A stretch of 63,732 nucleotides of DNA, the filler included, from Octopus bimaculoides (Eukaryota), in the NCBI RefSeq assembly GCF_001194135.2. It is 8 parts of 8 records of this genome, joined end to end, with 100 filler letters (N's around TTAATTAATTAA, not from the genome) between each part and the next. Parts side by side here need not be neighbours in the genome. Positions count along the whole stretch, not along the records: positions 10,747 to 39,563 come from NC_068998.1; positions 39,664 to 54,030 come from NW_026434105.1; 6 more parts are not named here. One strand, 5' to 3'. The translations under genes were made by a program, and so were the position numbers. Numbering within the stretch: position 1 is the stretch's first letter; the number at the start of each line of letters is the position of its first letter. Below the pieces are notes generated by a model. That model saw only the letters and a list, made by a program, of their open reading frames with translations, had not been told where the DNA came from and searched no databases. Below, piece by piece: positions 13,844 to 39,893 of this stretch.

Positions 13844-13925
13844 AAAATATAATAGACGTTTATGTCAACTAAAAGACTGTATTGGAAGTTTCAGAAGATA
13901 TTTGAAGAAGCTGGAGCAAAAAGAG

Positions 13926-15002
13926 ATGACCAACACACCCAACAAAACCGAATGTTATATTCTTATAGAATACATGAATTCTAGAATGACGGACGCTTTT
14001 TTTCCAGTACTAGTATATCTTGGAATTGCTATGGCACTTGGAACAATTGGGAATTTCTTCGTAGCATATATATATTTTTATAAATTTGTTGAGTCAGCCA
14101 CACATCTGTTCATTGTAGCACTTTCTGTGTGCGATTTTCTAGCTTGCGTAGTATGTATTCCTATAGAAATTGTTATGCTACATTATTCGTTCACCTTCCG
14201 CAGCGATGTTATGTGCCGCTTCATTGGTGCTATTGTGGCTCTAGTAGTGATCAATTCAGGTATGATTGTAACCATTATAGCAGTCGATAGATATAGACTT
14301 ATATGTCAACCTCTTAAACCAAAATTTACTGTTCAGGATTCAAAGAAACTCATAACATTATCAATAATCGCGTCTTTCATTCTTAGTTTACCGGCAGCTT
14401 TTGTGTACAGCAAACAAAACAGAATGGTCAGAGAATGTGGAAATATTGGAGAAGTGTGTTCCTTTGTTACCTATTTAAAAGGCAATGCATATCCTTTAAT
14501 CTATTATGTGGTAATGGCGGGCATTTGCTCTAGTTTGTTTATTTTGATCATGACTCTATACGGTTTAATTGGAATGCGTATTAGGGAAATTTACAAAATA
14601 AAGAAAACGAAAGCAATTCAATTACTTGAACATTCACAAGTTCTTACTACTTCCCAGAATACGTCGAATAATAGTAGACGTTCCAAAGTAAATTTACACG
14701 CTATTACTGCTGTGAGAAAGCGAGCTTTACGGCCAACTAGGACCAATTTAATTTTGTTCATCATCACTGTGATCTGGATTGTCAGTTATTTACCACATTT
14801 CGTTGGAACATTCTGGAGGTTGTTTAGTGAAGATTTCGATAACGTTGCAAGCTATAAAGACCAAAGTCTTTACCATTTTTTGACATTTTCTTATTATATT
14901 AACTGTACTATTAATCCATATATTTATGGACTTTTCAGTGAACAATTTCGTATTCAATTAAGACAGTTATTTAGTAAATTCTTTCGCTTCTCCAATCAAT
15001 AA
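13926..15002 (+). CDS. Orphan class A (rhodopsin-like) GPCR, copy 1; single coding exon, 358 aa
   Basis: Seven hydrophobic segments; TM1 GN, TM2 LSVCD, C3.25 (DVMCR), AVDRY, TM6 SYLPH, TM7 INPYIY. First ATG is at 13926 (the ORF track starts at a TTG). Polypyrimidine tract and CAG acceptor end at 13843. Confidence 0.95.
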   Translation: MTNTPNKTECYILIEYMNSRMTDAFFPVLVYLGIAMALGTIGNFFVAYIYFYKFVESATHLFIVALSVCDFLACVVCIPIEIVMLHYSFTFRSDVMCRFIGAIVALVVINSGMIVTIIAVDRYRLICQPLKPKFTVQDSKKLITLSIIASFILSLPAAFVYSKQNRMVRECGNIGEVCSFVTYLKGNAYPLIYYVVMAGICSSLFILIMTLYGLIGMRIREIYKIKKTKAIQLLEHSQVLTTSQNTSNNSRRSKVNLHAITAVRKRALRPTRTNLILFIITVIWIVSYLPHFVGTFWRLFSEDFDNVASYKDQSLYHFLTFSYYINCTINPYIYGLFSEQFRIQLRQLFSKFFRFSNQ

Positions 15003-16205
15003 CAAATCGAATCAAAGTCATCCTTTTGTAAAATATTTAAACAGCTAAGACGTTTTCGTTTGAGTGATTTATATGCATTTTTCTTTCAAATGAAACAGTT
15101 CCTCATGAAAAGTTACATGATATCATGTTGACATACATCATAAGTTGCATGATGTCATATTGGCATACATCATAAAAATGCTTAGAATATGTAACTACCC
15201 AGATCTAATCATAGTGTATTTGACGATTATGGAATAACTCTAGTGCACATTGAACTAAATGGAAAAAAAATGTTGGTTCCATTAGAAGAGTGGTAACAAG
15301 GATGTGGCGAGTCAGAGGAATCGACGCACAAGAAATAGCCATCAAATCTTTTATCCAAATCATATCATTCCATATTTAGAGAGTAAAAGATACATTGGGT
15401 AATGAAGTCCTAGATTCATTTCATGGCTAATTCAGATAACGAAGAGTGGCCCCCATGACTGTTGCAGGGTTACCGGGACTGGTAAGGCAAAGGAGAAAAC
15501 CCCACGATTCACGTGTGGCTGCAGTAGTAAGCAAAGTGTCAAGGTAACGAGTCCCGGTTTGAATACTTGCTACAGAATAGACTCCGATGAAAGCTGGCAT
15601 TGACGTTAAACCGGACAATGGATTAGGGTCTACCACACAAGGAGCAATATGGATGGGAAAAGATATCAGAGTCATTGCTGGAACATATTCACCGCATAGG
15701 TCTGCTTAGTTAGGGATTACTTAGAGCAACGCAACCACCACCACCACCACCATGTAAATTCGAACTTCCCATGTGCCATGCAAACAGGCATGGGTGACTA
15801 TGGGCCTCCATACTAAAGTCTGAAGATTCACAAGTTTTCTCACTGCCTTCTGCTTATGTTTTTACAGTTTGTCGCCTGCTCTCCCGAGTTTACCCACAAG
15901 ACACAGCGCCTATTTTGGGTAGAGCGTCTGGTCCACATGACATCAGGGCACGTTCACTCACTAGCACAGGTAGTGTGCTCGCACTCCTTAAAATCTCAAA
16001 ACAAGAACAAAGGATGAGAATTAAAAAAAAAAGCTGGAAATATTTACTAACAAAGATGGTCATAAAATTCCCAAGGGAATTCCCTAGAAAGATATATAAC
16101 TTAACTAAAGCAGCACCAACATCAAAATTAAAAGTATATATATATATATATATATATATATATATAAATTGTAAATGCAAAAAATAACAACAAAAACACA
16201 AAGGA

Positions 16206-16278
16206 TTCTGCGGTACACGTGTTTCAAGCTTTATATCAGTGTATAATTGACAATACAAAGCTATCTTCAGTCGCAAAA
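16206..16278 (-). ncRNA. Type I hammerhead-ribozyme-like motif
   Basis: Minus strand TTTTGCGA-CTGAAGA-tAGCTTT...AAAGCTt-GAAACACGTGTA-CCGCAGAA. Seven-bp helix I with an A.C mismatch at the junction, helix II of 6-12 bp, palindromic helix III ACACGTGT. Confidence 0.65.
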
Positions 16279-36849: not shown

Positions 36850-37345
36850 GTAAACATTAAACGGAAGTGGGCCTAACATAGTATCCTGGGGAAACCACTA
36901 ATGATTAGTCTTGTGTAAATTGCTTGAGTCACAAAATATCGAATCCTACTTGTCAGAAAATATTTAATCCACCGCTGTGGCTTACCACGGACTCTAAGGG
37001 TGGATAATTTCTCCAGGGAAATTCTGTGATAGACTTTGTCAAAAACTTTACTGAAATCAAAATAAATAACATCTGTACTGTAGACCCCTCCTAAAGCATT
37101 TAGAAAGCCACCAACGTGATCGAAGAGCTGTATTAGACATTCCGACTATTAAGAAAACCATGTTATTTGAGATCAAGGAATTGATTTTTCTCCCGGAAGA
37201 AAGCTATGTTTGATCTCACCGGCTTCTCGAATTCTTTAACAATACGAGTGTTTAGTAGATTAGACCGTAATTCACTGCGAGAAACTTATTTCCCTCTTAA
37301 AAACAGAGACAACACAGTGGGACAGAAAACGCTCAGGAATAAGAC
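36850..37345 (-). mobile_element. CR1/Jockey-type RT remnant
   Basis: Decayed NY..I..T.I.K.FEK...HGF..SR...DFSK.FDKV.H-like string, readable only across stops and frameshifts. Confidence 0.5.
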
Positions 37346-39257
37346 CTGGTTCCAGTGAATTCCCCCAGAGATGAACTGGAGGTTACGCAAATTGATTCTT
37401 GCACATTTTCAGGATAATAAAAGAGAGAAATCTCTCGGGTTAAATGGAATTAAATTTGATCAATTACCGCAACTTTATCCGCATCACGGAAAGTTATATC
37501 CATCTTTTATTGACAACGTTTTAAAGCATAAGATTAAGCAAAGCAATATGTCACTTGAGATAATGTAATATTTTTCTCTAAAGAGAGTCTTGTGAGAGAA
37601 TGAAAGAATGTTACGGGCACTAAACATTTTCATACAATAACAGAAATATATATAAACGCAGAGTTTAACTAACTTAGTAAAAATATATAGAAACGAGGTC
37701 TACGCTTCAGAGAATATACCAAAAAATGCAGGTGAAATCAAAAGGATGTTGAAATTATTTGCAACTTTAATATATTTTCACGAGAGAGAATGTTATTACT
37801 CTAGAAACGGCTATTGTTCTGTACGCATGCACTAAGGACGTTCTCCGTTTTCTTCGATTTCTAAACTATCAAGGTTCTGTGAAGAAGAAAAATAAACATT
37901 CCATAAATTACTTCCAGATGGTAAATAATTTCACTTTTAATTTTAATGAATGTCTCTCTTCGTAATCCATCAATTAATAAGCTACAGATTATATGATGCT
38001 GAAGTTTTCGGAAACAAATGAAATAGCGCTCTGCATGATTAATATATACTAGAAATTATAAAAACATCGTAATAGATTAAAGCAGATTGAATATAAGAAT
38101 TTTATGCATATTCTTTCTTGTAGTCCCTAATTTCATATTCAAATTTTTAGTTCCGCCTCGTGTTGTGAGAGAATGGTTATTTTCCTTGTTTTAACGACCA
38201 CTGCCAGAGGGAACAACATGTATTTGAAAACAAATATACTAAAACTTTTGAATGTATCATCACTAAATGATAGATAATAAAAACGTGGGTGAATAGCGGA
38301 CTGCATCCACACCCAATAATCACAGACTTATGTAAGGAAAAACAGGAGGGTATGATTTGTTTTATATATGCAGGAAGAATTAGTATTCGGAATAATTTAG
38401 CAGATAGCCGCTGCAGTCCGTCAAATATAGAAATGTAGATTTGCTGTCAAATCCACAAGGTCCTCAGGAACAATTTAATGGCTTTCGTTCCTTTGTGTTT
38501 AATTATATCTTAGTACTAGCAACGTGATTTTCTTGTTTCTCATCGCTCTTGATATTTTTAACTTTGTGTGCAGTGCCTTTCCAAGTGGCCTATTTAAGCC
38601 TGACAACTAGGTCTTTCACCAATCAGTTTTTCTCTGGTGGTAGAGCTTTTACTAAAATTAATGGATTCTGTTCTGACTTGTCATTTGATTGTTGCATGAC
38701 CTGTTTCTAATGACTACTACCGTGAATCCGGTCACTGAAGACTTTCCGGGATACAAACGACTCATTCAGCTTCTGGTAATCGTGTCTTCGGCTATCATAT
38801 TGTATTACTGACAATGTTGAGAATGCGTGGGATAATTTAAAGCAATACACGATATGGGGGAATGCACTGAAAGTTTTGTAGCGATCATATGAAATTTGCA
38901 TATGAGAGATGGGTATAGATATAGATAGAGATAACTAGAGAGAGAGAGAGAGAGAGAGAGAGAGAGAGAGAGAGAGAGAGAGAGAGAGAGAGGGGGAAAG
39001 GGAGAAAAAATATGACAAAAACATACAGGGACTCTTGCTACGATTTTCAGAAATGATGAATAAAAAATAAGATAAGGAAAAGATAATGTGAAGGAATAAA
39101 GCACAGTGCCTGCACAGTTGATTTGTACAGCATGGAGTGATGAAGACAGGGCAGCGTGNNNNNNNNNNNNNNNNNNNNNNNNNNNNNNNNNNNNNNNNNN
39201 NNNNNNNNNNNNNNNNNNNNNNNNNNNNNNNNNNNNNNNNNNNNNNNNNNNNNNNNN

Positions 39258-39319
39258 NTTTTAGTATTTAGTTCTTCTAAAATACTAGCACAAATGTTGA
39301 CACTGTTGTTTTGCTCCAT
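39258..39319 (-). CDS. Orphan class A GPCR, copy 4; N-terminal 20 codons only, rest lost in a gap or deleted
   Basis: MEQNNSVNICASILEELNTK versus copy 3 MEQNKSDNICASILEELNTK. Upstream 39320-39485 is homologous to 34665-34850, including the acceptor. Confidence 0.75.
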
Positions 39320-39893
39320 TTTCTAAATATTGTTTGAAACTTTGAGGCTAGTATTATGATCTGCGATTGTAGTCCTCGTAATTCCTGGAAAGACAAAGAA
39401 AAGTTGTTTGTAAACAGTTTATTTCAACAGACTCTCTGAAATATTATGCTTTACATCGAGAGTTAAGTCAACAAAGATTTTACAGTTCTATATTTAAGAG
39501 ATGTGAAATTATGTTCATTATTTACATTTGACGGATATTAGTTGTTAACACAACGTTTTGGCTNNNNNNNNNNNNNNNNNNNNNNNNNNNNNNNNNNNNN
39601 NNNNNNNTTAATTAATTAANNNNNNNNNNNNNNNNNNNNNNNNNNNNNNNNNNNNNNNNNNNNCCTACCTGTCTGTCTGTCTGTCTATCTATCTGTTTGT
39701 CTATCTGTCTATCTATCTGTCTGTCTGTCGATCTGTCTATCTATCAAACTGTCTGTCTGTCTCTCTCTCTCTTCTCATTCACTCTCCTTCTTAGAACATC
39801 ATTTAATACTCTCTCTCTCTCTCTCTCTCTCAACTACTGTATTTGCTAGGCGAAGAAATGGACAGAATCACAAAATGATTTAGAACAACAATA

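Follow-up and report, generated by a model that had tools for sequence, protein, structure and literature searches.

Two published studies of G protein-coupled receptors (GPCRs) of class A describe systems close to the locus reported here. Ritschard, Fitak, Simakov and Johnsen (2019, Proc R Soc B; PMC6408891) described two cephalopod-specific class A expansions, of which Group 2 holds at least 11 Octopus bimaculoides genes in their Table S2. A cluster, "Scaffold 14 030 in group 2", is named in their discussion together with its testis expression, and Figure 3 presents, by its legend, the most gene-rich scaffold of each group. Tandem co-localisation, testis-dominated expression, signs of positive selection and neuropeptide-receptor-like affinity are already reported there, and the function in the testis is given by the authors as unknown. 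More recently, a survey of Lophotrochozoa (Mol Biol Evol 2025; PMC11886862) proposed chemosensory roles for lineage-specific class A expansions. The present analysis concerns a stretch of O. bimaculoides DNA (GCF_001194135.2) of 63,732 nucleotides, filler included, referred to as the window, in which four related receptor copies lie between positions 13844 and 39384.

With a probability of about 0.78, the window holds part of an array of roughly 70 kb of octopod-expanded, orphan, peptide-receptor-like class A GPCRs that belongs to the published Group 2, two of its genes (G1 and G2) being expressed in the testis and a third (G3) in retina, sucker and skin. Positions in the part of the window that holds these genes were converted to the chromosome record CM046618.1 (GCA_001194135.2) by adding 12,284,376, with all of its blocks outside runs of N being 100% identical, and G3 is 97% identical to an O. 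bimaculoides protein whose locus is CM046618.1. The three genes were located by a listing of open reading frames (ORFs) and by tblastn, in which they matched one another at E = 1e-95 to 1e-113. G1 lies on the plus strand with its coding exon at 13844-15002 and a coding sequence (CDS) at 13926-15002, encoding 358 amino acids from the first ATG. G2 and G3 lie on the minus strand, with coding exons at 22188-23344 and 33582-34750 and CDSs at 22188-23258 and 33582-34664, encoding 356 and 360 amino acids, respectively. Extensions of G1 and G2 to TTG starts were considered and dropped in favour of the first ATG, in agreement with NCBI, whose gene calls for this DNA have products of 358 and 356 amino acids.

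All three reading frames are uninterrupted, and their products match the Pfam domain 7tm_1 (PF00001) over profile positions 2-260 of 260 with 112.8, 89.5 and 98.0 bits for G1, G2 and G3, respectively, at a cut-off of 30.5 bits, which places them in class A. The DRY motif occurs at residue 121 in each of them, and NPxxY reads NPYIY in G1, NPYVY in G2 and NPYIY in G3. In an alignment of 11 family members, N1.50, D2.50, C3.25, DRY, Y5.58, P6.50, NPxxY and the F-R pair of helix 8 are at least 90% conserved or invariant, and a motif of the second extracellular loop (ECL2), CGNIGxxC, is invariant across all paralogues. The corresponding residues N43, D70, C97, D121-R122-Y123, C171/C178 and N332-P333-x-x-Y336, which include the cysteine pair of C3.25 and ECL2, are present in G1-G3, and by these motifs the hallmarks needed for activation and G-protein coupling are intact. 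The CWxP toggle is absent from the sixth transmembrane helix (TM6), which reads (A/S)YxP: the place usually taken by tryptophan, two positions ahead of P292, is held by Y290, which is at least 90% conserved. A tyrosine in place of this tryptophan occurs in some class A receptors and does not exclude a protein from the class. An AlphaFold2 model of G3, built from the 11-sequence family alignment, gave helices at residues 5-53, 60-86, 94-127, 136-167, 189-243, 272-302, 312-339 and 341-355, which correspond to seven transmembrane helices and helix 8. As its confidence was low (mean predicted local distance difference test score 55, predicted template modelling score 0.45), the model was used for topology and helix count only, and no fold search was run, as any hits obtained with it would carry no meaning.

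Regional identities among G1, G2 and G3 were computed with region borders anchored on the conserved motifs. The block from TM1 to TM3 is 60-64% identical, whereas identity drops to 38-41% in TM5, 16-23% in the third intracellular loop (ICL3) and 17-50% in the third extracellular loop (ECL3), with 45-46% over the full length. A polypyrimidine-CAG acceptor is common to all four copies, 65-86 nt 5' of the ATG, and sets the coding exon starts at 13844 (+), 23344 (-), 34750 (-) and 39384 (-); the acceptor AG lies at 13842-13843 in G1, 23345-23346 in G2 and 34751-34752 in G3, leaving 82 nt of 5' untranslated region (UTR) within the coding exon of G1. From this conserved acceptor together with the open ORFs it follows that each gene has a single coding exon and at least one upstream non-coding exon. 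JGI model spans of 7.8-10 kb for G1 and G2 agree with such upstream exons, the model of G2 covering window positions of about 21328-29162; the 3'UTR of G1 extends to about 16070 in its JGI model, with an AATAAA at about 16020. The original prediction, made from the DNA alone, had described three intact paralogues of about 60% identity in TM1-TM3, divergent in TM5, ICL3 and ECL3, with one coding exon each. The ORFs, tblastn matches, Pfam matches and measured identities bear this out, and its outer limits, 13844 and 39384, are exon edges. It had also ascribed intact DRY and NPxxY motifs to every copy, which holds for G1, G2 and G3 and not for the fourth, whose corresponding regions are lost to an assembly gap. 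Within the 82-nt leader of G1, an ATG at 13862 begins an out-of-frame ORF that runs across the main start codon, a possible regulatory upstream ORF.

The three genes were placed in Group 2 by coordinates. Table S2 of PMC6408891 lists four consecutive Group 2 genes on Scaffold14030: 006261m (582483-585292, minus strand), 006262m (585360-595498, plus), 006266m (600756-608590, minus) and 006267m (612518-614092, minus). A single offset (scaffold position = window position + 579,428) was set on the ATG of G3, which therefore fits 614092 by construction. Under this offset G1, G2 and G3 correspond in order, strand and range to Ocbimv22006262m, Ocbimv22006266m and Ocbimv22006267m, respectively, and 006261m is matched by the gene that lies upstream of G1. 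On its 3' side the G1 model ends 50 nt past the AATAAA, and the control gene P0022 (A0A0L8HTH5), 530 kb away, lands in its listed range. The four Scaffold14030 IDs are absent from Table S3 of the same paper, so that no cross-check by domain coordinates was available there. Table S2 also assigns to Group 2, by UniProt ID, three further relatives whose sequences were verified: P0005 (A0A0L8FRL7), P0006 (A0A0L8HIJ1) and P0015 (A0A0L8HIH6). As Scaffold14030 is named in the 2019 discussion and falls under the Figure 3 legend, the cluster has already been described.

Around the window, the array extends for about 70 kb on CM046618.1 (about 12.29-12.36 Mb), of which about 25 kb is visible in the window, and it comprises at least six intact genes, one gene truncated by a gap and two pseudogenes. 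An additional receptor gene, intact by its NCBI call and equal to Ocbimv22006261m, lies about 8 kb before G1 on the minus strand (record 12,288,302-12,290,312), beyond the DNA shown here; counted on from G1 it would fall at about 3926-5936. P0006 and P0015, both intact, lie at record positions 12,344,441 and 12,357,854. The first pseudogene, at about 12,329,773-12,330,201, consists of a C-terminal half with no N-terminal half, its NPxxY changed to NLYIY, and the second, at about 12,334,442-12,335,340, still spans the full length but is broken by several frameshifts and stop codons. Intact genes, pseudogenes and lineage-specific extra copies together are the product of birth-and-death evolution after local duplication, which supports the view, taken from the outset, of a tandem cluster of lineage-specific, fast-diverging, single-coding-exon class A receptors. 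Ocbimv22006261m stands head-to-head with G1, and in JGI coordinates only 68 bp separate its 5' end from G1's first non-coding exon, an arrangement that suggests a shared bidirectional testis promoter.

A profile search against 1.84 billion representative proteins returned four hits only at 280 bits or more, all of them octopod (O. bimaculoides; O. sinensis; Argonauta hians; O. vulgaris / O. sinensis). Between 190 and 270 bits followed a smooth continuum of orphans that included oyster, abalone, chiton and cuttlefish proteins and two distant O. bimaculoides paralogues, the oyster and abalone orphans scoring 263-268 bits. The nearest non-octopod proteins were chiton and cuttlefish orphans at 25-30% identity. 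The Argonauta protein P0017 (343 bits) was considered as a member of the close subfamily and rejected, as it grouped weakly with the outgroup P0021 in neighbour-joining (NJ) analysis (52% support); the close subfamily as sampled therefore consists of Octopus species and Logan contigs. Profile matches to solved structures were nearly tied, with 95 bits for the orexin-2 receptor, 87 for CCK1R, 87 for NPFF2R and 79 for NMUR1. The names assigned by NCBI contradict one another among the paralogues (orexin-2, CCK-A, vasotocin, mesotocin, neuromedin-U and GHSR), and orthology to the orexin, CCK, vasotocin or neuromedin-U receptor groups was not found. Judged by these homologies, the NCBI names do not reflect orthology, and the family is peptide-receptor-like and orthologous to no named receptor. 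Both the earlier statement that the copies could be assigned to no conserved neuropeptide-receptor group and the description "peptide-receptor subfamily" are in keeping with this octopod-only set of hits followed by a continuum of molluscan orphans.

Expression was taken as the proportion per tissue from Table S2 of PMC6408891. The testes accounted for 0.996 of G1 and 0.945 of G2, and likewise for 0.96 of P0006, 0.997 of P0015 and 0.997 of 006261m. In contrast, G3 was distributed over retina (0.646), sucker (0.177) and skin (0.159), and P0005 showed similar shares of 0.52, 0.25 and 0.19, respectively. A peripheral sensory pattern occurs only in G3. Enrichment in chemosensory tissue is absent for G1 and G2 and ambiguous for G3. 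The chemosensory inference is not supported in the form in which it was made, only G3 being peripheral sensory and the family being small. A role in sensing environmental chemicals lacks support for G1 and G2 and is possible for G3.

The broader alternative, that the cluster represents environmental chemoreceptors, a GPCR-type repertoire of suckers, skin or the olfactory organ, is on this evidence quite unlikely. The tandem layout, the single coding exon, the lineage-specific duplication, the pseudogenes and the high ratios of nonsynonymous to synonymous substitution rates (dN/dS) given below would all fit it, as would the 16-25% of G3 and P0005 expression held by each of sucker and skin in Table S2 and the roles proposed for such expansions in the 2025 survey. 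However, G1 and G2 have essentially no expression in sucker or skin in that table, and the retina holds the largest share of G3. ECL2 is not highly variable, because CGNIGxxC is invariant in all paralogues, and the at least 11 Group 2 genes of Table S2 form no large repertoire. PMC11886862 itself finds such expansions reduced in cephalopods and points to ion-channel chemotactile receptors.

The orthologues in O. sinensis lie on one chromosome, and their gene order and relative orientation are the same as in O. bimaculoides. G1 is 80% identical to P0007 (100% bootstrap), G2 is 70% identical to P0171, and G3 is 83-85% identical to P0002 (NJ support 73%), P0003 being the positional counterpart of G3; the G3 clade has extra copies in both species. 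dN/dS was estimated by the Nei-Gojobori method between the two species, with the G3-clade pairs drawn from P0003, the second O. sinensis copy and the paralogue P0005. G1 and its orthologue gave a dS of 0.081, a dN of 0.109 and a dN/dS of 1.34 (Fisher test against 1, P = 0.38), and G2 gave 0.148, 0.161 and 1.09, respectively (P = 0.75). The G3-clade pairs ranged from 0.43 to 0.65, significantly below 1. Within the fast genes, not one of 73 sites in TM6 of G2 carried a nonsynonymous change (binomial P = 1e-5), and in TM3 of G1 one of 77 did (P = 0.003). The extracellular parts of G2 changed fastest, with a dN/dS of 2.2 that is not significant. The comparison by domain, proposed with the prediction, found amino acids in G1 and G2 replaced at the pace of silent sites while the helix core, in TM3 or TM6, was constrained, at whole-gene values not significantly different from 1.

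The same ratios, indistinguishable from 1, would be expected if G1 and G2 were decaying or functionless young duplicates whose testis signal was permissive transcription and whose dN/dS was neutral drift. The CDS of G2, at about 86% conservation against 87.6% over 2.3 kb that include it, is no better conserved than its flanks, and two clear pseudogenes lie in the same array. However, the ORFs are intact in both species, and random substitution at the observed density left an intact frame in just 2.5% of the G1 trials and 0.3% of the G2 trials, considering substitutions alone. Nonsynonymous change is significantly depleted in TM6 of G2 and TM3 of G1, the activation motifs are all kept, gene order is conserved between both species, and the testis pattern occurs also in Callistoctopus minor according to PMC6408891. 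Pure decay is unlikely because the frames are retained and the helices are frozen.

Under the favoured reading, that of a Group 2 array of functional, orphan, peptide-receptor-like GPCRs of a young family divided between testis and peripheral tissues, the copies of the array go back to local duplication followed by birth-and-death evolution. G1-G3 would work as ordinary ligand-activated GPCRs, with ligands that are probably peptides. For G1 and G2 a role in sperm or the male germ line is probable, where fast evolution is typical of reproductive genes, and sensory epithelia of the periphery have probably taken up G3 and the near-twin that forms the lost fourth copy. A more specific form of this reading, in which G1, G2 and their testis-specific neighbours are sperm-surface receptors for female- or egg-derived peptides, serving sperm attraction, activation or storage in a cephalopod with internal fertilisation, their near-neutral to accelerated protein evolution reflecting sexual selection or species-specific gamete recognition, and in which G3 and the fourth copy were recruited recently to sensory cells of sucker, skin and retina, is speculative and, taken as a whole, unlikely. 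As testis-specific receptors with dN/dS of about 1.1-1.3 and a frozen TM6 or TM3, G1 and G2 are nevertheless reasonable candidates for reproductive signalling.

Several observations weigh against the favoured reading. All expression values stem from a single published data set, in which reads may cross-map, G3 and P0005 being 89% identical in nucleotides. Promiscuous transcription can also account for testis expression in young duplicates. A dN/dS near 1 also fits relaxed constraint, and no whole-gene or pooled-region comparison of G1 or G2 differs from 1 (Fisher P > 0.2). The fastest parts of G1 are ICL3, the C-terminal tail and TM1 and not the extracellular face, unlike what would be expected of a ligand arms race. 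G1-G3 were matched to their JGI IDs by coordinates and strand, not by the sequences of those IDs.

The fourth copy is represented by the 5' end of a paralogue at 39259-39384 on the minus strand, with its acceptor AG at 39385-39386, a 5'UTR of 65 nt and its ATG at 39319. Its coding part comprises 20 codons and one base (39319-39259, minus strand), reading MEQNNSVNICASILEELNTK, of which 18 of the 20 residues (90%) are identical to the N-terminus of G3 by tblastn. At the nucleotide level, 39484-39259 is 79% identical over 249 nt to the region upstream of G3 at 34851-34604, acceptor included. From this 5' similarity and the shared acceptor the fourth copy is taken as a genuine duplicated 5' end. 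Its body is removed by an assembly gap of 100 N at 39159-39258, so that its transmembrane regions, DRY and NPxxY are not visible. Below the gap no receptor similarity was found in any frame at E values up to 50, and what follows, from 39158 to 34665, is intergenic sequence that runs collinear with the DNA upstream of P0003 in O. sinensis. The count of one partial copy was therefore right as to a real duplicated 5' end and overstated as to its content, which is only 20 codons.

A candidate for the lost body is found on LGKD02068404.1, an unplaced 4.9-kb scaffold of the same assembly. Its positions 2-949 encode the N-terminally truncated paralogue P0005 (306 amino acids), which reaches the contig edge and matches G3 at 81% protein and 89% DNA identity. 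As the frame of P0005 begins at the equivalent of residue 52 of G3, about 31 codons would be absent between the stub and the scaffold. The best match of the 3' flank of the scaffold is the O. sinensis copy upstream of P0003, a position equal to that of the fourth copy relative to G3, and no overlap was found between the scaffold and the far side of the gap at 39159-39258. By synteny and the start of its frame, LGKD02068404.1 is probably the lost body of the fourth copy, an assignment that falls short of proof.

The gap also bears on current annotation. The NCBI model XP_052830325.1 (P0001) joins 39259-39319 to 33582-34580, that is, 20 codons of the fourth copy to codon 29 onward of G3, 5.7 kb apart, and omits the first 28 codons of G3. 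At its junction no AG acceptor exists in any register (the preceding bases being TC, CA or AT). The model appears to be two paralogues fused into a chimera through the assembly gap, and was perhaps guided by an O. sinensis protein without the same 8 residues. Users of the current NCBI annotation may take this apparent chimera across the gap as a useful warning.

In this part of the window, runs of N occur at 13013-13438, 17378-18215, 23563-24136, 30525-30534, 32555-32999 and 39159-39258. Only the last of these cuts a gene, namely the fourth copy, and the five before it touch no coding frame, those from 17378-18215 onward being intergenic or within 5'UTR introns. The gap at 23563-24136 is placed in the 5'UTR intron of G2, since it lies inside the JGI model span and 305 nt 5' of the ATG of G2. 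Microsatellites or short tandem repeats adjoin four of the five gaps in range (17108-17377, 30417-30664, 32397-32474 and 38937-38992), three of these gaps being non-coding and distinct from 39159-39258. The repeats beside the gaps are likely the cause of the assembly breaks.

Other sequence in the window includes a repeat of about 217 bp, present with 95% identity at 13439-13654 in the 5'UTR intron of G1 and at 27548-27763 between G2 and G3, which is probably an interspersed element. An ORF at 20268-20696 on the minus strand contains PDIVVKDHEGKKCFLIDVSIPADDNV, and another at 12733-12960 on the plus strand resembles the helix-turn-helix start of a transposase. Both have the look of transposable-element remnants, and neither gave a match in Pfam. 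In all, eight ORFs of this part of the window besides the receptor genes were rejected as genes after Pfam scans that returned nothing.

Among known systems, the vertebrate class A peptide receptors share DRY, NPxxY and C3.25 with the octopus proteins, and the NCBI names are borrowed from them. The best PDB matches, which extend over almost the entire length at 64-95 bits, are to orexin, CCK, NPFF, neuromedin-U and neurotensin receptors. They differ in that no one vertebrate family stands out, and orphan molluscan receptors score 190-270 bits. The likeness to vertebrate peptide receptors is a family resemblance and not orthology.

The lophotrochozoan class A expansions of PMC11886862 resemble the array in their tandem arrangement, their lack of one-to-one orthologues and their truncated or pseudogene members. 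That survey, however, is based on counts from genomes and contains no cephalopod expression data in its main text, whereas here two of three genes are testis-specific. The general chemoreceptor idea for such expansions is thus in print since 2025, and the correction made here is that two of the three genes in question are testis genes. Olfactory and taste receptors of the mammalian male germ line, found on sperm, are likewise clustered, fast-evolving GPCRs with single-coding-exon members that are transcribed in the testis (reviews include PMC2290870 and PMC4703994). They belong to unrelated families, and the octopus parallel is an analogy only, known here from testis transcription.

The nearest system remains the Group 2 cluster on Scaffold14030, which is the same locus, judged by the order, strands and ranges of its genes in Table S2 of PMC6408891. 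Little is added as discovery, since the 2019 study had already described the cluster along with its origin within the lineage, its tandem arrangement and its tissue distribution. Compared with the tables, discussion and figure legend of that paper, the present analysis adds the gap-truncated fourth copy, the two pseudogenes, the extent of about 70 kb on a chromosome-scale assembly, the conserved 5'UTR acceptor and the region-by-region dN/dS against O. sinensis orthologues.

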